Position numbers and translations under genes: made by a program. This document shows, piece by piece, positions 34,822 through 48,881 of a stretch of DNA of 64,000 bases. The notes beneath the pieces were generated by a model that did not search any database, was not told where the DNA came from, and worked only from the letters and a program-made list of their open reading frames with translations. The stretch's first letter is position 1, and every line of letters begins with the position of its first letter. Source of the DNA: Anaeramoeba ignava BMAN (lineage: Eukaryota > Protista > Anaeramoebae); assembly GCA_028826165.1 (NCBI GenBank), contig JAPDFW010000006.1:1-64000 (forward strand), in the 5' to 3' direction.

Positions 34822-36908
34822 ATGATTGTTCTTATTATTGGAGATATTCATATTCCTTATAAATCAAGTGAAATTCCAGAAAAATTTAAAAATCTTTTTC
34901 AACAAGGCAAAATTGATTATTTGATTTGTACAGGAAATTTAACAACAAAATCAACACTTGATTATTTAAAAACAATTACAAAAGAAATATATATTGCTCG
35001 AGGTGATTCTGATGATGATGTAGATTATTATTTAATAAATAAATTAATAAATAATTTAATAAATAAATTAATAAATAAATTAATAAATTAATAAATAAAT
35101 AAATAAATAAATTAATAAATAAATTAATAAATATAAATTAATAAATAAATTAATAAATAAATTAATAAATAATTTAATAAATAAATTAATAAATAAATTA
35201 ATAAATAAATTAATAAATAAATTAATAAATAAATTAATAAATAAATTAATAAATAAATTAATAAATAAATTAATAAATAAATTAATAAATAAATTAATAA
35301 ATAAATTAATAAATAAATTAATAAATTAATAAATAAATTAATAAATAAATTAATAAATAAATTAATAAATAAATTAATAAATAAATTAATAAATAAATTA
35401 ATAAATAATTTAATAAATAAATTAATAAATAAATTAATAAATAAATTTAAAAATAAATAAATTAATAAATAATTTAATAAATAAATTAATAAATAAATTA
35501 ATAAATAAATAAATTAATAAATAAATTAATAAATAAATTTAATAAATAAATTAATAAATAAATTAATAAATAAATTAATAAATAAATTAATAAAATAAAT
35601 AAATTAATAAATAAATAATTTAATAAATAAATTAATAAAATAAATTAATAAATAAATTAATAAATAAATTTAATAAATAAATTAATAAATAAATTAATAA
35701 ATAAATTAATAAATAAATTAATAAATAAATTAATAAATAAATTAATAAAAATTAATAAATAAATTAATAAATAAATTAATAAATAAATTAATAAATAAAT
35801 TAATAAATAAATTAATAAATAAATTAATAAATAAATTAATAAATAAATTAATAAATTAATAAATAAATTAATAAATAAATTAATAAATAATTTAATAAAT
35901 AAATTAATAAATAAATTAATAAATAAATTAATAAATAATTTAATAAATAAATTAATAAATAAATTAATAAATAAATTAATAAATAATTTAATAAATAAAT
36001 TAATAAATAAATTAATAAATAAATTTTTAATAAATAAATAATAAAAATTTAATAAATAAATTAATAAATAAATTAATAAATAAATTAATAAATAAATTAA
36101 TAAATAAAATAAATAAATTAATAAATAAATTAATAAATAAATAAATTAATAAATAAATTAATAAATAAATAAATTAATAAATAAATTAATAAATAAATTA
36201 ATAAATAAATTAATAAATAATTTAATAAATAAATTAATAAATAAATTAATAAATAAATTAATAAATAAAAATTTAAATAAAAATAAATTAAATAAATTAA
36301 TAAATAAATTAATAAATAAATTAATAAATAATTTAATAAATAAATTAATAAATAAATTAATAAAAATAAATAAATTAATAAATAAATTAATAAATAAATT
36401 TAAATAAATTAATAAATAAATTAATAAATAAATTCAATAAATAAAATTTAATAAATAAATTTCAATAAATAAATTAATAAATAAATTTAAATAAATAAAT
36501 AAATTAATAAATAATTTAATAAATAATTAATAAATTAATAAATAAATTAATAAATAAATTAATAAATAATAAATAAATTAATAAATAAATTAATAAATAA
36601 ATTAATAAATAAAAATAAATAAATTAATAAATAAATTAATAAATAAATTAATAAATAAATTAATAAATAAATTAATAAATAAATAATTTAATAAATAATT
36701 AATAAATAAATTAATAAATTAATAAATAAATTAATAAATAAATTAATAAATAAATTAATAAATAAAAATAAATAAATTAATAAAAAATTAATAAATAAAT
36801 TAATAAATTAATAAATAAATTAATAAATAAATTAATAAATAAAAATAAATAAATAAATAAATTAATAAATAAATAAATAAATTAATAAATAAAATAAAAA
36901 TAAATTAA

Positions 36909-36943
<35 letters not shown>

Positions 36944-38311
36944 ATAAATAAATTAATAAATAAATTAATTAATAAATTAATAAATTAATAAATAAAAATT
37001 TAATAAATAAATTAATAAATAAATTAATAAATAAATTAATAAATAAATTAATAAATAAATTAATTAATAAATAAATTAATAAATAAATTAATAAATAAAT
37101 AAATTAATAAATAAATTAATAAATAAATTAATAAATAAATTAATAAATAAATTAATAAATAAATTAATAAATAAATTAATAAATAAATTAATAAATAAAT
37201 TAATAAATAAATAAATTAATAAATAAATTAATAAATAAATAAATTAATAAAAATAAATAAAAAATAAATAAATAAATAAATAAATAATAAATTAATAAAT
37301 AAATTAATAAAATAAATAAATAAATAAATTAATAAATAAAATAAATAAATAAATTTAATAAAATAAAATTAATAAATAAATAAATAAATAAATTAAAAAA
37401 AAAAATTAATAAATAATAAATAAAAATAAATAAATTAATAAATAAATAAAATAAATAAATTAATAAATAAATTAATAAATAAATTAATAAATAAATTAAT
37501 AAATAAATAAATAAATAAATTAATAAATAATTTAATAAATAAAAAAATAATAAATAAATTTAATAAATAAATTAATAAATAAATTAATAAATAAATTAAT
37601 AAATAAATAAAAATAAATAATAAATAAATTAATAAATAAATTAATAAATAAATTAATAAATAAATTAATAAATAATTTAATAAATAAATTAATAAATAAA
37701 TTAATAAATAATTTAATAAATAAATAAATAAATTAATAAATAAATTTAATAAATAAATTAATAAATAAATTAATAAATAAATTAATAAATAAATTAATAA
37801 ATAATTTAATAAATAAATTAATAAATAAATTAATAAATAAATTAATAAATAATTTAATAAATAAATTAATAAATAAATTTAATAAATAAATTAATAAATA
37901 AATTAATAAATAAATAAATATTTAATAAATAATTTTTGGAAATAGGAACTTGGATTTGAATTAGAAAATTCATTACAAATTGAATCATTTAAAATTGGAT
38001 TAATTCATGGGCATCAAGTAGTTCCTTGGGATGATTCAAAAACATTATCAATTTTCCAAAAAAAAATGGGAACTGATATTCTTATTTATGGAAATACACA
38101 CGAAAGCAAAGTTTTTAAATTAGAAGAAAAACTTTATATTAATCCAGGTTCTTTAACAGGAGCTTATCATCCAACTCAATTAGATACAATCCCTTCTTTT
38201 GTTGTTTTGGATATCCAAAAAGATTCTTTAACTTCTTATATTTACAAACTTAAAGATGGTGAAGTTAATGTTGAGAAATTTACTCACAAAAAAGAACCTT
38301 TAAATAATTAA
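34822..38311 (+). CDS. VPS29: Retromer subunit VPS29; 2 exons
   Basis: Exons 34822-35019 and 37946-38311. MIVLIIGDIHIP...ICTGNL...ARGDSD, IGLIHGHQVVPW, DILIYGNTH, INPGSLTGA, PSFVVLDI. Confidence 0.96.
35030..37932 (+). repeat. 12-nt satellite (AATAAATAAATT) filling the 2.9-kb VPS29 intron (35020-37945)
   Basis: Continuous tandem array with almost no G or C. Confidence 0.95.
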
Positions 38312-38535: not shown

Positions 38536-41500
38536 ATGATAAAGTGTTGTGGAGTTCCATTGTATGATAAACGAAAAAAAAGGTGTAGAAGATTAAAATC
38601 ACCAGTAAAATAAAAATCAAATTAAAAATTCAAATTAAAAAATTCAAATTAAAAAATTAAAATTAAAAAAATCAAATTAAAAAATCAAATTAAAAAAATT
38701 TTTTTTTCTTCATCAAAAATCGATCAATTAAAAAAAAAAAAAACAAAATTAATTAATTAAAAAAAATAACACGTTGAAAAAATAGTATTTACTTGATTTA
38801 GTTAGTGATAGAGTAAAGAGTAGATTATTAACAATTACTATTTTCCTTTCTGTGTTTACTTTTGCTGGTTATACTTTATTTTGGGAAGTTATGCATAGAC
38901 CAACTAATTTAGCAACAGCTCCTTATAAACCAACAAAAGTATTTTCTAATTTCAATAAATTCAACATTTCAATAATTCAAAAATTTTTTCTTTTTTTTCC
39001 TTTTTTGATCATAGATTACAGTTTTAAAAAGTCCTTCTTCTCAAGCAACAGTAGGAGTTCCTTTTACCACTCAACCAAGTGTAAATTAAAATTAAAATCA
39101 AAATCAAAATCAAAATCAAAATTAAATTCAAAATCAAAATTAAAATCAAAATCAAAAATTAAAATCTAAATCAAATTCAAAATCAAAATCAAAATCAAAA
39201 TCAAAATCAAAATCAAAATCAAAATCAAAATTAAAATTAAAATTAAAATCAAAATTAAAATCAAAATTAAAATCAAAATTAAAATCAAATTCAAAATTAA
39301 AATCAAAATCAAAATCAAAATCAAAATTAAAATTCAAAATCAAAATTAAAATCAAAATCAAAATCAAAATCAAAATCAAAATCAAAATCAAAATTCAAAT
39401 TCAAAATTAAAATTAAAATTAAAATAAAAATCAAATTCAAAATCAAAATTAAAATTTAAAAAAATAGGTTCAAGTTTATGGCCAAGATGGAACAATGGGA
39501 GTTCAAGGAGTAGAAGTTATTGCGAAAGCATATTATTATGATCCAAGTCTTACAAAAAGATTTGAAGGAGCTTCTTTAGATGATGTATTATCTCCTGATT
39601 ATATTGAAGCAAATGTATCTTTATCAACAATGAATCAACTTAAAATTTATCAACCCATTCTTTCAGGAGATACAGTTGCTTATTCAAATGAAGTATTTTT
39701 CAAACTGTTTTTTTTTAAAAAATAAATTGAAAAAATAAATTGAAAAAAATAAATAGGAAGGAATTGTTAATTTTGATAACTTATCATTTGTTGCTGGATA
39801 TCCTGGAATAAATACAATTTATTTTGAATCTGAAGGTATTTTATCAGCTACAGAAGTTCTTGTTACTCTTAAAGGATCTGGTATTTTATTTTAAATTGAA
39901 AAAATCATTCAATTGAATTAAATTAAATTATTTTTTTTTTTTTTTGATTCAAAAATTTAGTTTCTTCTATTGAATTTAGTTCTAATCCTCCTCAAAATAT
40001 ATCAATGGATGAAACAACTCAAGTTCAATCAATTTATGCTACAATCAAAGATACTGTAGGTGAACCTTTATCAGGAAAATTTATGACTTTGTTTGCTTTA
40101 AATGATTTGGATATTTTTGGAGATTTTATGAACCAAAGATTTTGTAATTCAAATTAAAAAAAAAATCTTTTCAATTCAATTCTCAAAATTAAAAAAAAAA
40201 CAATTTAGATTGGATGTCAACTCATATTTTAGGTCCATCTGATGAGGATGGAATTATTAATGTAGATTTGAATATAACAGGAACAAATACAAAAACTTTA
40301 TTTTTTCAAGTTGCTTGTGAAGGAAATTTATTAAATTGGGTTTATTCTGAAAATAATATTTATCAACCAACTAAAGTTATCTCAAATGGTTTATACAAAA
40401 AAAATTATAAAAATTAAAAAATTCAAAATCAAAATTAAAATCAAAATCAAAATCAAAATTAAAATCAAATCAAAATCAAATTCAAAAATTTCCTTCTTTT
40501 TTTTCTAGTTGAATCTGTTTTGATTCTTCAACAACCTTCTCCAAATATTATTTTCGAAAATGAAACATTTTCAATTCAACCAGTTGTCCAAGTTTTGGAT
40601 TCAAATGGTAAAGAAAAATCATCCAAATCTAAAATAAAATAAATTCATTTTTGATTTTTATTTGATTTTTATTTTAGGAACTGGAATTGCTGGAAAAAGA
40701 GTTTTTGCAATGATTTCAACTCAATTAGATTCAACTCTTCCATATTTTATTTCTGATTTATCTGATCAAGAAACAAAAAGTTTAATCAATCCAATAAGTT
40801 CAGAAACTGATTCTGATGGAAAGTAAAAAAAATTTTAAAGGAAAAAAAATTAATAACAAGAAAGCAAAAAAAAATTTATTCTTTTCTTTTTTGATTTTAT
40901 TTGATTTTATTTTAATTTAGAGCAACATTCCAAAATCTTGCTTTTTCGATAGATGGAAAAACCAATGAAAATAAATCATTTGCAATTTCATTTGTTTGTG
41001 ATGGAATTTCTTCAGATCCAACAAATGATATTACTGTTAAATCAAAAGTAGATCATCTTGAAGTTTTAGGGAATTCATTTAATTTTTCAGACTTATTTAA
41101 TACAGATGAAGAATGGCCTCCTGGAGCTCAATTTATAGGTCAAGTTGGCTTGATGAATCCTTCTTTACAAATTCGTGTTTTAGATTCTGATGGAAATGGT
41201 GTTTCTGGAAAAGTTCCTCATTTTAGAACTGTTAATATTAATGATACAAATGATTCACTTATTGTTATCCAAACTATTGATACAGTCTCAGAGTAATCCA
41301 AAACCAAAAATAAAATTAAAATCAAAAATAAAATCAAAACCAAAAATAAAATCAAAATCAAAATTAAAATCAAAAATTAAAATTAAAATCAAAACCAAAA
41401 ATAAAATCAAAATCAAAATTAAAATCAAAATTAAAATCAAAAATCAAAATTAAAATTAAAACCAAAATTAAAATTAAAATTAAAATCAATTAAAAATCAA

Positions 41501-44500
41501 AATCAAAATTAAAATTAAAATCAATATTAAATTAAAATCAATATCAATATCAAAATTAAAATCAAAATCAAAATTAAAATTAAAATCAAAATCAAAATTA
41601 AAATTAAAATCAAAATCAAAATCAAAATTAATTTCCTGAATAGTTTGGATGGGATTTTTAGTACACAAGTTCTTGGTCGTTCTGGACCAAATGGAACAAC
41701 TTATTTCAGAATAGAAGTTACTATTGATGATGTTCCACACATTCTTAATTTTACTTTTAATTTAACAGTTTTTGCTTGGAATGCAACAACAAGTGATCAA
41801 ACATCATGCAGAATAGTTGAAATTTTAACAGAAATTCCAACATCTATTGAATCAGGAACAGATATAGGACCAATAACAGTTCAAATTTTTGATTTTGCAA
41901 GAAGACCTGTGAGTGGAAATGATATGTATATTCTTTTAACAACTCCTGCCAATGTATTATTAACATATTTTCCTTATTGGTTTGATTCAGCAACTACTGA
42001 TTCAACTGGAACTGCAGTTATTAGTAGTTTGATTATTGAAGGGTATTTAAATTTTCAAAAGAATTATTCTTATTCTTATTCTTATTTTTATTCTTATTTT
42101 TATTCTTATTTTTATTCTTATTTTTATTCTTATTCTTATTCTTATTTTTATTCTTATTCTTATTCTTATTCTTATTTTTATTCTTATTTTTATTCTTATT
42201 CTTATTCTTATTTTTATTTTTATTTTTATTCTTATTCTTATTTTTATTCTTATTTTTATTCTTATTCTTATTTTTATTTTTATTTTTATTTTTATTCTTA
42301 TTCTTATTTTTATTCTTATTCTTATTCTTATTCTTATTTTTATTCTTATTCTTATTTTTATTCTTATTCTTATTCTTATTCTTATTCTTATTCTTATTCT
42401 TATTCTTATTTTTATTCTTATTTTTATTTTTATTCTTATTCTTATTCTTATTTTTATTCTTATTCTTATTCTTATTCTTATTCTTATTCTTATTCTTATT
42501 CTTATTTTTATTTTCATTCTCATTCTTATTTTTATATAATATCACTGGAACATTTGCTATTTCAGCAGCTTATGATAGATATTATGAATGTTATTCAAAT
42601 GAAATTAAAATTGATATAAGAACTCCTGTTACTCAAATGGAATTATTACAAGCTCCTCAACAATCTTATGCAACAGAATATTTCAAACATTCAAATTTTG
42701 AAGTAAAATTAAAATCAAAATCAAAATCAAAATTAAAATCAAAATTAAAATTAAAATTAAAATCAAAATCAAAAATTATAAATTTTAGTTAAAAGCTTTA
42801 GATAAATATGGAAATCCTGTTTCTGGAAAAACTGCAGTATTTTACCTTTATTCATATCCTACTTATGTTGCTCAAGAAATTTTAGATGCATTTTTAACAT
42901 GGGGTTCAGAATCAGTTCAAGTTAATAATGCAATAACAAATGGAAGACAATTTTTTGGAATTCAAACAGAATCAACAACAGATTCAAATGGTTTTATTGA
43001 CAAAAAAAAAGAATAAAAGAAGAAATTTAATCAAATATTTATTAGATCCCTTTATGAACCTTTCTTTTTCAGTTGATGGAAAATTTATGAAAAGGAATTG
43101 TTACATTTGAAAATTTTTATATTTACAAAAATTCAAAATCAAAATCAAAATTCTTTTTTTACAGTTGATGGAAAAATTAAAATTTGAAAATTAAAATTAA
43201 AATTAAAATTAAAATTGAAATTTTCAAAATCAAAATTATTGGTAAGCAAAAATCAAAATCAAAATCAAAATCAAAATCAAAATCAAAATCATTTATTAAA
43301 ATCAAAATCATTTATTAAAATCATTTATTAAAATCAAAATCAAAATTCAAAATTAAAATCAAAATTAAAATTAAAATTAAAATTAAAATTAAAATCAAAA
43401 TTAAAATTAAAATTAAAATTAAAATTAAAATTAAAATCAAAATCAAAATTAAAATCAAAATCAAAATTAAAATTAAAATTAAAATTAAAATTATGAAATA
43501 GCTGAATATCTTCTTGTTATTCAGAATGCCTCTTCTTCAACTATAACATTAAACGAACCTTGGGATTATGTTCCTCAACTTGTACTATTAGATAGCAAAT
43601 ACAACGAAATAGATCTTCAAAGAGTAAAATTAAAAACATATATTGAAGGATTAAATGAAGATGAGTATATAATAACTTTTGATTGTGGAGATGAACACAC
43701 AAGTGAATCACCAACAAATGATTGCTATTCATATTCATACACATCAAGTAGTGTCATGTATTTTTACAATTTCCAAATCATAGAATTTTCATCACCGAAT
43801 CCTTGTTTCCAGATTTACTTTGTATTTGCGGAGGGAGAACCTTATGAATTGTATTCAGGATTAAGTGAAGTGTATTGTATCGAAAATTACATCACAAGTG
43901 TTACTGCTCTATCTGATGTTTCAGCTTATACAACTGTGGATACTTACACTCAATCAGCTTCTATTCTTCAAACTGAAACTCTTCTTGGAACTGCCATTCA
44001 AGGACTTGAACCTAATGTGGATGTTGTTGATAAACCCCCTGGTTTTGCAGATTGCACTTTTCAATGGCAGTATTTCGCAACGGATTCTTTAGGACAATCT
44101 TACTTATGGATTGAATTGTTTGATGGATGTGTTACAGGAAGATATAGTTTTATAGCTTCACTTGGAGGAGTTAATGCGTAAGAAATGATTAAAATCAAAA
44201 TTAAAATCAAAATCAAAATCAAAATCAAAATCAAAATTAAAATTGAAATCAAAATCAAAATCAAAATTAAAATTAAATAATTGAAATCAAAATAATTGAA
44301 ATTAAAATAATTCAAATTAAAATTAAAATTAAAATTAAAATTAAATAATTGAAATCAAAATAATTGAAATTAAAATCAAAATTAAAATAATTCAAATCAA
44401 AATCAAAATTCAAATTAAAAAATTCAAATCAAAAAATCAAAATTAAAATAATTGGAATTAAAATTCTGTTTTTTTTTTAGTTCGACTCTTTTCTATATTG

Positions 44501-47248
44501 ATTTAACAGATCAAGCTAAATATATCGAAATTGTTCAATACGAAAACAATACTTCAGTTGATGCAATAGTTGGTGAGTTTATTCCACAATCTTTTGAAGT
44601 TGTTGTGAAGATTTATACACTAGCAGCATTGAATGGAAAATCAGTTACAGCATTTATTTCTGGAGTAAATAAAAAATAAAAAAGAAAAAAGAATTTAGAT
44701 TAAAAAATCCTTTCAAATTAATTGATATTTTTTCTTTTTTATTTTTGTGATTGGAATTCATTTCAATTAGTATAATAACTCGAGTTCTGAAAATGTTTGT
44801 TCTGATGAAGCAACAGTCCCTGATTATACAAATGTGACTCTTGACGCATATCATGCAACTGAAATTACAACCTCAAATCAATTTTTATTACTATTTCAAT
44901 ATTATGGAACAGAATCAAGCGTAGGAACTGCAGTGTTTAATCTATTGAAATTCACATCAGGAAAAAGTGGATTTTATTGTGTTAAATTCAAGGTGGAAGA
45001 TATTGTAACTTCAAGTGGAATTGTAATGAATGTAATCAATAATGTAACCGAAGTGGCAATAGTGAAACAACCATCAAATAAAGTAAAATATTTGAAAAAG
45101 AAAAGAAAAGAAAAAAAAATTTTTTTCAATAACATGAAATGATTGAATTAAAATATTTTTCAAAAATGAAAAAAAAAAAAAAAGGTGAAAACAGGACATC
45201 GTTTTGATCAACAACCCTTAATCAAAATTTATGATAATGGAATAGGATTAGCAAATCGATCAATAACTGTTGGATTTTATCATGAATGCATTGGAGCTTC
45301 AATTACATACAATGACAATCCGATAACAGATCCGAACGGAGAATATCAATTTTGGGATCTAACAATATCAGGAACAGGAGGAACATGTCAACTTGTATTT
45401 ATTTCACAAGGAATAGCATCTGATCCATCAAGCAAGTTCAACATCATCGGATTGTCAGAACCCTCATTCCAATATATTGGGAAATGGAAGTCAATCATTG
45501 CGTTGACTGTTCTTGCTTTTGTTCCCTTGTTCTTCTTCAACGAAGCAAATACTTCAACTTGGTTTTTGGTTGTTGGATTGTTGGCTTGCGCAATCCCAGA
45601 GTTTTTCGGTTATGTAGCATTGGAAAAGCTTTCTTTCCAACAGAATCAAGATGGCGAGAATTCATACTTGAGATTGATCACTTCAATGTTTATCATTTGC
45701 ATCAATATTCTTGTTATTTTGTTTGCTTGGAATATGGTGGAAGGATTTATGAAAAAAAAGAATTGGCAATTTTATGATAAAAAAAAACTTGCTTCGCAAA
45801 AATTTGTCAAATATTTGTTGCAAAAAAATGAGGACATGGTCTTTTCAGCTGAATTACCTGATGTGGATCTTTATGATTCTCCAAATGAAAGCAATTCAGA
45901 AATTGAACTTGATAATTTTGGAAACAAAGTGAAAAAAGAGAAGGAGTATATTACACACAAGAAAACAATCGAAATCAAAAACGAGGTCATGGATTCGTTC
46001 TCAGACATGATGTTGAGCTCAAGAAACCGATTCATTTCTTGGATAATGCCAAAGCAAAAAACAGCACACTCAAAATTCGAACCTTCATTTTCATTCTTTT
46101 ATCCACAAAGATTAATTCTTGCTGCATGTTTAACAATTCTGCTGCTGATCTACTTCCTTGCAGGCGCGTTTCTTCTTGTCGAGTGGTTTGTGTTCTATCT
46201 GAAAAAATGGCGCGAGGACATTTTGGGCTATCAAAGTAGAATAGATTACATCATCGCGCTAATCAACGAATCCATTCTTGAGACAGTTACTCAATCAAGC
46301 TCCTTGAATCCTGCGAAGATCAATTACATCCCAGACTCAATAGAAACCATCTTCAAGGCCTCTCAGACACAGGTTGACCGACTGATTAGCATTGTGAAGT
46401 TCTCTGGGAGGTTCACTGGCATCATGCTATTTTTGATATTTTTATTTGTTTGGTGGTTGATTTTCAGATTATATCGCCGTAGAATCATGTGGCTTAGACA
46501 AGGAGTAAGATTTACTAAGAGAAAGCCAAATACAGGAAAGGCCACATCGTTTCCCGGTCTTACAGCGGCTACATTTATATACGGATTTGTGGCGCTTTGG
46601 GTGATCACAACTGCAATCATTATTGTTCTTCTTTTCTTCCCTTTTTTCAACGTTCTTTGGTTCGTTTTCAGATGGATTTTCTATACTTTTATGATCGGTT
46701 TTTTCGTGATGAAAATGTGGGAGTTTTTTCTCTTACTCTTTATCAATAGAAACTCAGTTACAAAGCTAAGATGCTTTTCAACCGCAGAATTCATTTGGAC
46801 TTTCCTCAATTTTGTTTATGGAGTCGCATTTGCTTCTGCACGCATCTTTAGGGTGCTCTACTTCACGCTATTCCATTTCATCAGAGTTGATCTCGATACT
46901 TTGCATAACATCTCCTTCCTTAAAAGAGCTTATAGATCATATGTCGGAATGATTTATATGGACCATATTCATAATAACCCAATCCGTTTGTGTTTTGGAA
47001 ATATGCTTGAAAGAAAAAATTTAAAAAAATCAATTGCAAAACTTGATCTAGCAAACAAAAGTTCTGATTTTTCTCCCGAATTCCCAAATGATAAACCTAA
47101 AAATAACCAAGATTTTGTTGAAGAAAAACAGGATTTGATTCTTCAACAAAAAGTAAAAAGTCGGTTTTTGTTTTTGATTACAATCTCAAGAAACAAAAAT
47201 TTGATTAATTCTCGTCAAAGAAATCTTCAAATTTCTCAAAAAAATTGA
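38536..47248 (+). CDS. STRA6/RBP-receptor-like polytopic membrane protein with an N-terminal signal anchor and a long ectodomain of invasin/Ig-like repeats (about 1,900 aa, about 18 exons)
   Basis: Phase-compatible exons: 38536-38604, 38786-38938, 39015-39080, 39468-39692, 39757-39880, 39961-40143, 40209-40388, 40509-40607, 40678-40822, 40921-41292, 41644-42042, ~42540-42702, 42789-42990, an unresolved piece ~43040-43240, 43502-44178, 44481-44664, 44771-45082, 45185-47248. Repeated QPS..F..QP.V.V.D..G...GK / TD..G...F..L units. The last exon has FFYPQRLI, YRRRIMWLRQG, FIRVD, AYRSYVGMIYMDHIHNNP and RFLFLITISRNKNL. Confidence 0.75.
42065..42530 (+). repeat. (TATTCT/TATTTT)n microsatellite filling an intron of the STRA6-like gene
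   Basis: Hexamer array following the donor at 42043. Confidence 0.92.
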
Positions 47249-47378: not shown

Positions 47379-48881
47379 ATGGAAACTTATTCAAATTTAG
47401 AAAAACTCTCAAATGATTTAAAAAATTTATTCCAAAACCAAAAACAAAAACAAAGCAAAAACCAAAATCAAAACCAAGAAGAAAGTCATTTTGATTTTGA
47501 AATAATTTCTGAACAAGATCAAATTTCATTTAAAACTCATAAATCAATTCTTTCTTCAAGAAGTGAATATTTTAAAACTCTTTTCAATTCAAAAATGTCA
47601 GAATATCAAGAAAAAATTACTTTAACTGATATTCCAAGTCCAACTCTATTTGCAATTCTGAATTATTTTTATTCAGGAAAAATTGAAATTAATTTAGAAA
47701 ATGCGATTGAAATTTTAATTTTTGCTTCAAGATATTTAATTGATGAATTAATAGAAACTTCTTCTTACTTTATCAAAAACAATTTGCAAATGCAAACTAT
47801 TGTTGATGTTCTTAATTTATCTGAGGAAATGAGTTTAAATCAATTATTGGAATTTTGTTATCAATTTATTTCAGAAAATTTTTACGAATTTATCAAAACT
47901 TCATTTTTTCTTGAACTTGAAGAAAATCATCTAAATTCAATTCTATCAAATGATAAAATTTTCACAAACGAATTTGAAACTTTCCAATCAATAATCAAAT
48001 GGGGAAAACATAAATCAAATATCAATAAAGAAAAAGAGAATCAAAAACTTGATAATCAAGAAAGAGAGCAATTACAAGATAAAATTTCAAGTCTTGTTGA
48101 TAAAATCAGATTTATTGACTTCTCAAAAAAGGAAATTGCCAAAACTTTGAAAGAAGAATTAATTCCAAAACAAATTTCACAAAAATTAATGAACTTTCTC
48201 ATTCTGAAAAACGAAAAAGATCAAGGAGAATTGAGTCAATTTATTCAAAAAGAAACTGAAGATCCGAAATCATTGATCTTCAAAGAAAGATATAAATTTG
48301 ATTCAGAAATTATTCAAGAAAAAGGATATGTGAACAAATTAAAAAAATGGATAAATGATAATCGTTTTTTTTTCAAAATGAAAAAAGGATTTTCAGCAAA
48401 AAAAGATGGATTTGATTGCAAAAAATGGCATGATATTTGTGATAATAAAGGAAAAACATTAGTTATTATCAAAACAAAAGATAATTTTATTTTTGGAGGA
48501 TTTACTCAAATTGGATTTACAACTGATAAATCAAAATGGAGAGAAGATTCTCACTATTTTGAAGATGGATGGATTACTGATCCAAATTCCTTTATTTTTT
48601 CATTAAGAAATGACAAGAACGATAGAAAATCAGAAAAATTTTCAATTAAACAAACCCAAGATAACTTTGCTGTTTATTATAACTACTCAAATAAAGGTCC
48701 AACATTTGGAAAGGGAAATGATTTTATTTTAAATTCTAATCTACAACATGGTTATTCAAATTTTGGTTATACTTACAATCTTCCTAAGGGATTTGATTAT
48801 GATACAAAAGAATCAAGAGGTTATTTAGCTGGTTCTTATGATTCTTGGGAAGTTGATGAACTTGAAACTTATTTCATTTAA
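47379..48881 (+). CDS. BTB/POZ-BACK-TLDc domain protein, intronless
   Basis: FKTHKSILSSRSEYFKTLF...YFYSGKI (BTB), FLELEENHLNSILSND..NEFETFQSIIKW (BACK), KDGFDCKKWHDICDNKGKTLVIIKTKDNFIFGGFT...GPTFG...VDELETY (TLDc). Confidence 0.93.
   Translation: METYSNLEKLSNDLKNLFQNQKQKQSKNQNQNQEESHFDFEIISEQDQISFKTHKSILSSRSEYFKTLFNSKMSEYQEKITLTDIPSPTLFAILNYFYSGKIEINLENAIEILIFASRYLIDELIETSSYFIKNNLQMQTIVDVLNLSEEMSLNQLLEFCYQFISENFYEFIKTSFFLELEENHLNSILSNDKIFTNEFETFQSIIKWGKHKSNINKEKENQKLDNQEREQLQDKISSLVDKIRFIDFSKKEIAKTLKEELIPKQISQKLMNFLILKNEKDQGELSQFIQKETEDPKSLIFKERYKFDSEIIQEKGYVNKLKKWINDNRFFFKMKKGFSAKKDGFDCKKWHDICDNKGKTLVIIKTKDNFIFGGFTQIGFTTDKSKWREDSHYFEDGWITDPNSFIFSLRNDKNDRKSEKFSIKQTQDNFAVYYNYSNKGPTFGKGNDFILNSNLQHGYSNFGYTYNLPKGFDYDTKESRGYLAGSYDSWEVDELETYFI

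Follow-up and report, generated by a model that had tools for sequence, protein, structure and literature searches.

A STRA6-like membrane protein with a large adhesin-like ectodomain in the anaerobic protist Anaeramoeba ignava

STRA6, the retinol-binding protein (RBP) receptor of animals, is a membrane protein of about 670 amino acids (aa) with a short N-terminus located outside the cell. It has nine transmembrane (TM) helices, five of them N-terminal, and one intramembrane helix; the topology of nine TM helices plus one intramembrane helix reportedly goes back to Chen et al. 2016. A second group of surface proteins, comprising the bacterial adhesins invasin, intimin, InvD/InvE and FdeC as well as bacterial Big_1/Invasin_D3 proteins, is built from tandem beta-sandwiches of about 95 aa. 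STRA6 was called animal-specific in one paper, a full-text literature search found no study of non-animal members of STRA6 or its Pfam family PF14752, and the Anaeramoeba genome paper (PMC11550330) makes no mention of STRA6, retinol, Ig-like or invasin. Here, we describe a locus of Anaeramoeba ignava, a free-living anaerobic protist filed under Metamonada, at which both types of module are predicted to occur in one protein. The DNA that was analysed, referred to as the window, is a stretch of 64,000 nucleotides from contig C8 of the genome assembly. The best overall explanation for positions 38536-47248 of its forward strand, to which we assign a probability of roughly 0.55, is a single gene encoding a polytopic surface protein of about 1,860 aa that would act as a conduit for a hydrophobic ligand and is a member of a family of 'long' STRA6-like proteins that is old and pan-eukaryotic.

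The locus was modelled with 17 exons. All 16 introns are bounded by GT..AG, mostly in the form GTAWWT...TAG, and the spliced model has 5,577 bases and 1,858 codons with no internal stop. The G+C content of the DNA is 20-30%, with some stretches near 0-5%. As stop codons are very frequent in a genome of 20-30% G+C, 1,858 open codons are far beyond chance. The joined model of 1,858 aa was used for this check of the open reading frame (ORF), for hydropathy analysis, for the repeat hidden Markov model (HMM) and for alignment to a paralogue (P0002), and database searches were performed with single exons or with the proteins P0001 and P0002. P0001 is the NCBI protein M0811_13931 (1,167 aa; 42637-47245), which is exactly the C-terminal end of the 17-exon model. 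The public gene model M0811_13931 is thus 5'-truncated by 691 residues.

An exhaustive search with P0001 retrieved P0002 (1,890 aa, E = 0), which was matched through its residues 810-1886. Since the match begins at residue 810, about 800 further N-terminal residues are implied. P0002 is M0811_01983, a paralogue in the A. ignava genome (contig C82, locus C82:915800-925799), and its 90% cluster includes P0151, a transcript-derived ORF of 1,913 aa from the EukProt A. ignava transcriptome that is marked complete, has the same N-terminus and carries its STRA6 domain at 1518-1902. When P0002 was compared to the window by tblastn, exon 2 and all subsequent exons were matched in the proposed order, down to the stop codon. 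A global alignment of P0002 and the 17-exon model gave 63% identity over the full length, exon 1 included, the product of which, MIKCCGVPLYDKRKKRCRRLKSP, aligns to MRKCCGI-VYNKQTKTCGKLRSP of the paralogue. After mapping of P0002 on its own locus, the positions of all 16 introns of the window copy coincided with paralogue introns to within one residue; the paralogue has two introns more. One extra intron of the paralogue, at residue 585, is absent from exon 11 of the window copy and represents a gain or loss between the paralogues.

This comparison, together with the transcript of the sister gene, supports the domain arrangement, and 38536-47248 appears to be a single gene in which the upstream exons are joined to the STRA6-like module. 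The initial annotation, made from the DNA letters, had assigned the upstream exons to the same gene as the STRA6-like part, and the collinear paralogue with its shared introns agrees with this assignment. All peptides that it had quoted are present where it had placed them: MIKCCG..KRKKRCRR begins at 38536, the hydrophobic anchor LLTITIFLSVFTFAGYTLFW is found in exon 2, the repeat peptides VLKSPSSQATVGVPFTTQPS/VQVY, ILQQPSP..FSIQPVVQVLDSNG/TGIAGKRV and IVKQPSNK/VKTGHRF.. span exons 3/4, 8/9 and 16/17, respectively, and the tail FIRVD..AYRSYVGMIYMDHIHNNP..RFLFLITISRNKNL lies in the last exon. As the NCBI model starts at 42637, the locus might be taken for two independent genes, one upstream for an Ig-repeat protein that is secreted or anchored and another for a STRA6-like protein. 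We consider this very improbable: Met 42637 lies in the middle of an Ig repeat within an exon that is still open further upstream, an N-terminus at this position would leave an extracellular Ig array with neither signal nor anchor, and the joined arrangement is found in the paralogue, in its transcript ORF and in the orthologous groups of other phyla.

The last exon matched Pfam family PF14752 (RBP_receptor) with an E-value of 2.3e-11 and 43.6 bits (cut-off 25), and a scan of the genome returned the same coordinates. A single-sequence search of PDB sequences gave no match at E 1. With a profile of 32 family members that had the window protein as its first row, zebrafish STRA6 (5sy1_A) was retrieved at E 5.8e-36 over residues 341-659, with a weaker stretch at 229-296. 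An AlphaFold (AF2) model of residues 560-1167 of P0001 had a predicted local distance difference test score (pLDDT) of 72 and a predicted template-modelling score (pTM) of 0.66. When this model was submitted to Foldseek, 5sy1_A was the sole match below E 1e-3 (E 1.3e-5, probability 1.00, template-modelling score 0.40), and 5sy1_A also ranked first in VIA-align with a Z of 14.3 over 427 aligned residues at a root-mean-square deviation of 7.7 A; the next row had a Z of 11.6 on 127 residues. A Z near 13-14 alone is weak for helical bundles, and the fold evidence carries weight because the STRA6 match is unique and is joined by the sequence evidence. Taking Pfam, profile and fold together, we concluded that the module is a true homologue of STRA6 within the RBP_receptor family, in agreement with the C-terminal resemblance noted in the initial annotation.

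Hydropathy and the AF2 model place TM1-3 at the start of the membrane module. A predicted cytosolic loop of about 113 aa links TM3 to TM4, and a helical hairpin of about 65 aa, predicted to be extracellular, separates TM4 from TM5. TM6, TM7 and one more long hydrophobic helix come next, ahead of helices that are predicted to lie in the cytosol. With the helix that precedes the ectodomain (TM0), the protein thus has TM0, seven TM helices and the long hydrophobic helix; the C-terminal five of these match STRA6, and the N-terminus is predicted to be cytosolic. Based on the profile alignment and on loop lengths, we read TM4-7 and the last hydrophobic helix as TM6-9 and the intramembrane helix of STRA6. 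The STRA6 topology further suggests that TM1-3 correspond to STRA6 TM3-5 and TM0 to STRA6 TM2, which would place the ectodomain at the position of the short TM2-TM3 loop of STRA6. TM0 is a hydrophobic helix of 20 residues (hydropathy peak at residues 37-56) that follows 36 mostly basic residues with a Cys-Cys pair. Before the helix, a motif P-x-[FIL]-LD[LF]-x-x-D-R-V-R-x-R is conserved in Anaeramoeba paralogues, Pelomyxa schiedti (P0043) and the metagenomic protein P0045, and motif and TM0 together are conserved as far as Pelomyxa. A cleaved signal peptide was rejected on the grounds that 36 mostly basic residues and a conserved motif stand ahead of the helix. We read TM0 as a type II signal anchor, and the N-terminal segment seems to belong to the membrane domain as a functional element.

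Between TM0 and the module lies an ectodomain of about 1,190 aa with 21 N-x-S/T sequons. A repeat HMM was built by iteration over eight family proteins, starting from the last repeat, and identified nine units in the model, at residues 77-201, 221-312, 339-449, 493-566, 599-675, 698-749 (truncated), 791-849 (weak), 1029-1148 and 1164-1253, the last two with E-values of 6e-13 and 6e-25. The repeat consensus is ..QPS....G..F..QPVVQL.D..GN.V...G..VTA......TD..G.A.F..L.I.G..G.YTL.F. An AF2 model of residues 335-575 of P0001 (pLDDT 81.7) comprises two beta-sandwiches, for which Foldseek returned InvE (5n40), intimin D0-D1 and D00-D0 (6tpl and 6tqd), FdeC (4e9l), InvD (5ldy) and invasin (1cwv) at E 1e-6 to 6e-5; generic Ig domains (titin, RAGE) ranked close behind the adhesins. 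Dozens of multi-repeat proteins were matched by phmmer using residues 422-569 of P0001. The matches that were traced are a protein from a metagenome-assembled genome of Sphingobacteriaceae (P0006) and P0005, which has CarboxypepD_reg, Invasin_D3, Big_1, Big_2 and He_PIG domains. In a relative from Luapelamoeba (P0156), Big_1 was matched with 35.2 bits (cut-off 34.9). These results support an ectodomain formed by a chain of eight to nine Ig domains of the invasin/intimin type. The region encoded by exon 14 harbors the weak unit at 791-849 and gave no Pfam match, and an atlas feature search with this exon yielded leads only, to Ig_SMCHD1_6th/Big_1 clusters. A search of PDB with the Ig-repeat profile gave one marginal match, 5mfi_A (E 0.0017), which was taken as spurious.

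A six-frame scan of the A. ignava genome for PF14752 identified at least 22 loci, 21 of 22 above the cut-off. Three of the loci lie within 17 kb of contig C23 (28896-45633), and many are located in open frames of 1,200-1,650 aa. In A. ignava, A. flamelloides, Pelomyxa and Luapelamoeba, the repeat HMM identified proteins of 1,300-3,250 aa with 4-10 Ig units ahead of a C-terminal STRA6-like domain, and proteins within the same ranges of length and unit number and with the same domain order were found in Thecamonas trahens, an apusomonad, and in two diplonemids, Sulcionema and Lacrimia. Fewer units are present in Clastostelium (three; 1,297 aa) and Ceratiomyxa (two; 906 aa), and shorter matches without Ig units, some of which may be fragments, include cryptophyte and dinoflagellate sequences. 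As the same arrangement is present in Amoebozoa, an apusomonad and diplonemids, the sequence comparison indicates that the Ig-STRA6 fusion is old and widespread and no local invention. The fusion described in the initial annotation is no peculiarity of the locus; it is the standard arrangement of a family of at least 22 loci in A. ignava, and it is shared with these groups. Public databases already tag family proteins with PF14752, and one cryptophyte entry is automatically named 'Receptor for retinol uptake STRA6'. Another A. ignava member with Ig repeats and STRA6-like domain (P0050, KAJ5068224.1; 2,009 aa) bears the NCBI name 'RNA polymerase iii transcription initiation factor b', probably due to misannotation or a merged gene model. 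Thus, true STRA6 homologues with a giant adhesin-like ectodomain exist in Metamonada, Amoebozoa, apusomonads and diplonemids, with more than 20 copies in one free-living anaerobe. They provide a starting point for asking which role the STRA6 fold had before retinoid signalling, and some of them, above all the expressed paralogue M0811_01983, are candidates for structural and biochemical studies.

For animal STRA6, work by Chen et al. 2016 and Kawaguchi et al. is said to be the basis for a dimer, a lipophilic cleft, energy-free transfer and regulation by calmodulin. Judging from positive-inside charges and the STRA6 topology, both termini of the Anaeramoeba protein would be cytosolic and the Ig array would loop out of the cell between two membrane tethers. 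If STRA6 is taken as a guide, the membrane module may dimerise and form a lipophilic cleft that opens outward and sideways to the bilayer. The Ig array would hold or space an extracellular donor or partner, and a hydrophobic small molecule might pass through the cleft, with no energy input, between this partner and the membrane. The C-terminal helices may bind a calmodulin-like regulator. The 32-member profile matched the 29-residue CaMBP2 peptide of STRA6 (5k8q_B) at E 8.5e-5, and the helix KVKSRFLFLITISRNKNL occupies the position of STRA6 CaMBP2 with its hydrophobic spacing kept. The strongest EF-hand loci that were inspected (contigs C74, C78, C104 and C105) encode divergent calmodulin-like proteins of about 140 aa or two-EF-hand exons; a canonical calmodulin in a single exon was not seen among them. 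RBP-bound retinol is unlikely as the ligand. Lipid uptake with an adhesin-like capture arm for contact-dependent scavenging from bacteria, as put forward in the initial annotation, is compatible with the data and purely conjectural.

A possible, if rather unlikely, alternative is that the protein serves as a receptor in adhesion or signalling, the Ig array of which binds prey, a symbiont, a substrate or another cell. The STRA6-like module would then transduce signals or act as an anchor, in connection with calmodulin-like proteins or kinases, and would not be a conduit for hydrophobic molecules. Such a role would fit the resemblance of the ectodomain to bacterial adhesin stalks and the growth of the family to at least 22 loci, an expansion characteristic of recognition receptors. 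Signalling modules could be present in the conserved N-terminal motif and the C-terminal helices, both predicted to be cytosolic, and animal STRA6 is reported to signal via JAK2/STAT5. However, conservation within the family is highest in the membrane helices and in the segment R.D...GY.SY...DH..NNP that is shared with STRA6, suggesting that a conserved molecular activity resides in the membrane module itself. One role does not preclude the other, and both may coexist. Going further than the conduit function that we favor, the doubly anchored combination of Ig array and STRA6 might be the ancestral eukaryotic form, from which animal STRA6 was shortened, its built-in capture arm being swapped for the soluble carrier RBP, and the more than 20 Anaeramoeba copies might allow hydrophobic metabolites (lipids, quinones, sterol-like molecules) to be exchanged, with no energy input, with bacteria that are held on the surface of the cell or symbiosome. 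Taken as a whole, we regard this scenario as doubtful.

Several points weigh against a single intact gene for a STRA6-like conduit. For non-animal members, a transport mechanism is proposed solely from their homology to animal STRA6. In the N-terminal bundle, three helices are predicted in addition to TM0, compared to five in STRA6, and a complex prediction for exon 2 (TM0) with the STRA6-like module gave a score of 0.00, which speaks neither for nor against packing. No Pfam family, Big_1 (PF02369) and Invasin_D3 (PF09134) included, was matched at E up to 1 in residues 1-600 of P0001 or in seven upstream/ectodomain exons. Of the invasin/Ig ectodomain proposed in the initial annotation, the fold of the invasin/intimin type stands, with nine HMM units, and none of the repeats passes Pfam Big_1. 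Similarly, the calmodulin-binding helix that it had suggested is matched at the family level, and the window copy, SRFLFLITISRNKNL, is devoid of the W, Y and N-P of zebrafish STRA6. Sequence comparison thus suggests that a CaMBP2-type helix is conserved as a family feature and that its key residues are altered in the window copy.

The remaining points concern blemishes of the window copy itself. At positions 42535-42536, where a (TTATTC)n array of 472 bases ends, the ancestral acceptor site of exon 12 reads TT instead of AG. In the paralogue, the splice between exons 11 and 12 reads GG/gtaaat...tttag/ATATAATATT across an intron of only 59 bases, compared to ttttt/ATATAATATC at 42532-42536 of the window. 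Also, the small exon that is intact in the paralogue locus is reduced to a remnant (Table 1) which reads GIVTFENFYIY, an AAAATC insertion, a frameshift and then ..VDGK, and which is skipped by both the NCBI and the 17-exon model. Finally, a transcript-derived ORF of the window copy was not found in protein searches, a result that is not firm due to the length windows applied. The TTATTC array was considered as coding sequence and rejected; as the frames differ on its two sides, it is not translated.

These features would be expected of a decaying or already split paralogue in which splicing fails or shifts frame after exon 11, so that the locus would yield no more than a shortened Ig protein, or else a STRA6-like protein that is 5'-truncated and starts at Met 42637. 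The altered acceptor, nearer cag acceptors that, as read from the sequence, shift the frame into a stop, the frameshifted and microsatellite-invaded exon for paralogue residues 770-809 and the presence of a transcript ORF for the paralogue and none for the window copy all count in favor of decay. On balance, we nevertheless judge decay to be unlikely. In a very AT-rich genome, 1,858 codons over 17 exons are still open. An in-frame acceptor, tgatag/A at 42578, lies 42 nt downstream of the lost one, agrees with the local TAG consensus and leaves the frame intact. Its use drops the 42 bases 42537-42578, that is, the 14 residues (Y)NITGTFAISAAYDR, and this skipped sequence is still open and paralogue-like, pointing to a recent change or to an error in base calling beside the microsatellite. 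In addition, loss of part of one Ig domain among nine is usually tolerated. The blemishes could thus be tolerated losses in a nine-domain chain, base-calling errors by microsatellites or early decay, and we retain the single gene for a long STRA6-like protein as the preferred explanation.

Table 1. Features of the STRA6-like gene in the window (positions in the window).
Feature	Position	Strand	Description
Exon 1	38536..38604	+	Start codon and basic, Cys-bearing N-terminus MIKCCGVPLYDKRKKRCRRLKSP, predicted cytosolic
Exon 2	38786..38938	+	Conserved juxtamembrane motif LDLxxDRV+xR and membrane helix TM0
Exons 3-13	39015..42990	+	Ig-like repeats 1-6, model residues 77-749
Exons 3-7	39015-39080, 39468-39692, 39757-39880, 39961-40143, 40209-40388	+	
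Exons 8-10	40509-40607, 40678-40822, 40921-41292	+	
Exons 11-13	41644-42042, 42579-42702, 42789-42990	+	
Intron 11	42043..42578	+	About 79 copies of TTATTC
Decayed small-exon remnant	43091..43190	+	From comparison with paralogue residues 770-809
Exon 14	43502..44177	+	Cys-containing, beta-rich ectodomain region of 225 residues
Exons 15 and 16 and first 99 codons of exon 17	44481..45481	+	Last two Ig-like repeats, adjoining the membrane
Exon 15	44481-44664	+	
Exon 16	44771-45082	+	
Exon 17	45185-47248	+	Last exon, 687 codons
Membrane module	45482..46874	+	From hydropathy, AF2 helices and profile alignment to 5sy1_A
Pfam PF14752 RBP_receptor match	46019..47218	+	Profile positions 220-604 of 605
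C-terminal amphipathic helix	47150..47221	+	KVKSRFLFLITISRNKNLINSRQR, position equivalent to STRA6 CaMBP2
Stop codon	47246..47248	+	
Intron microsatellite stretches	39083-39455, 41299-41628, 42064-42535, 43173-43493, 44235-44462		

Genes are densely packed around the locus. A VPS29-like ORF (38066-38311; Metallophos_2, E 4.5e-7), apparently the last exon of its gene, ends 225 bases before the start codon, leaving no room for extra 5' exons. Directly downstream, an intronless gene encoding a BTB-BACK-TLDc protein of 500 aa (47379-48881) starts 131 bases past the stop codon. Just upstream of the VPS29-like gene, a tandem array of pure A+T, (AATA)n / (TTAATAAATAAA)n, extends over 2.9 kb (35032-37932) with a G+C content of <1%. 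Within the STRA6-like gene, 5 of the 16 introns are enlarged to 300-540 bases by hexamer microsatellites (AAATCA, CAAAAT, TTATTC, AAAATT).

Compared to M0811_01983, the window copy has an identical domain order from the N-terminal motif to the C-terminal helix, as do the long STRA6-like proteins of Anaeramoeba, Pelomyxa, Luapelamoeba and Thecamonas. Relative to this paralogue, it lacks 14 residues where exons 11 and 12 meet as well as the small exon that encodes paralogue residues 770-809, and its introns are swollen by the hexamer microsatellites. With invasin, intimin and the other bacterial adhesins introduced above, the ectodomain has in common the tandem beta-sandwiches and the signature Q-P-x-V-x-V-x-D..G-N/x...T-D-x-x-G. 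Unlike inverse-autotransporter adhesins, the Anaeramoeba protein has no beta-barrel anchor, LysM or C-type lectin tip. It further differs from the bacterial proteins in its eukaryotic host, its intron-bearing gene, a predicted tether of membrane helices at both ends of the array and repeats that stay below the Pfam Ig thresholds.

With STRA6 (zebrafish 5SY1) and the vertebrate paralogue STRA6L/RBPR2, the protein shares a homologous membrane module and cytosolic tail. Motifs common to it and STRA6 are the YPQRL-type TM6, W..F..YR.RI...R.G after TM7, F.R.D...GY.SY...NNP and, at the level of the family, the helix RW.L..TL..NP.L. In contrast to animal STRA6, the Anaeramoeba protein carries an additional N-terminus that is predicted to be cytosolic, TM0 and an Ig array of 1,190 aa, and it belongs to a family with at least 22 loci in A. 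ignava, compared to one or two known in vertebrates.

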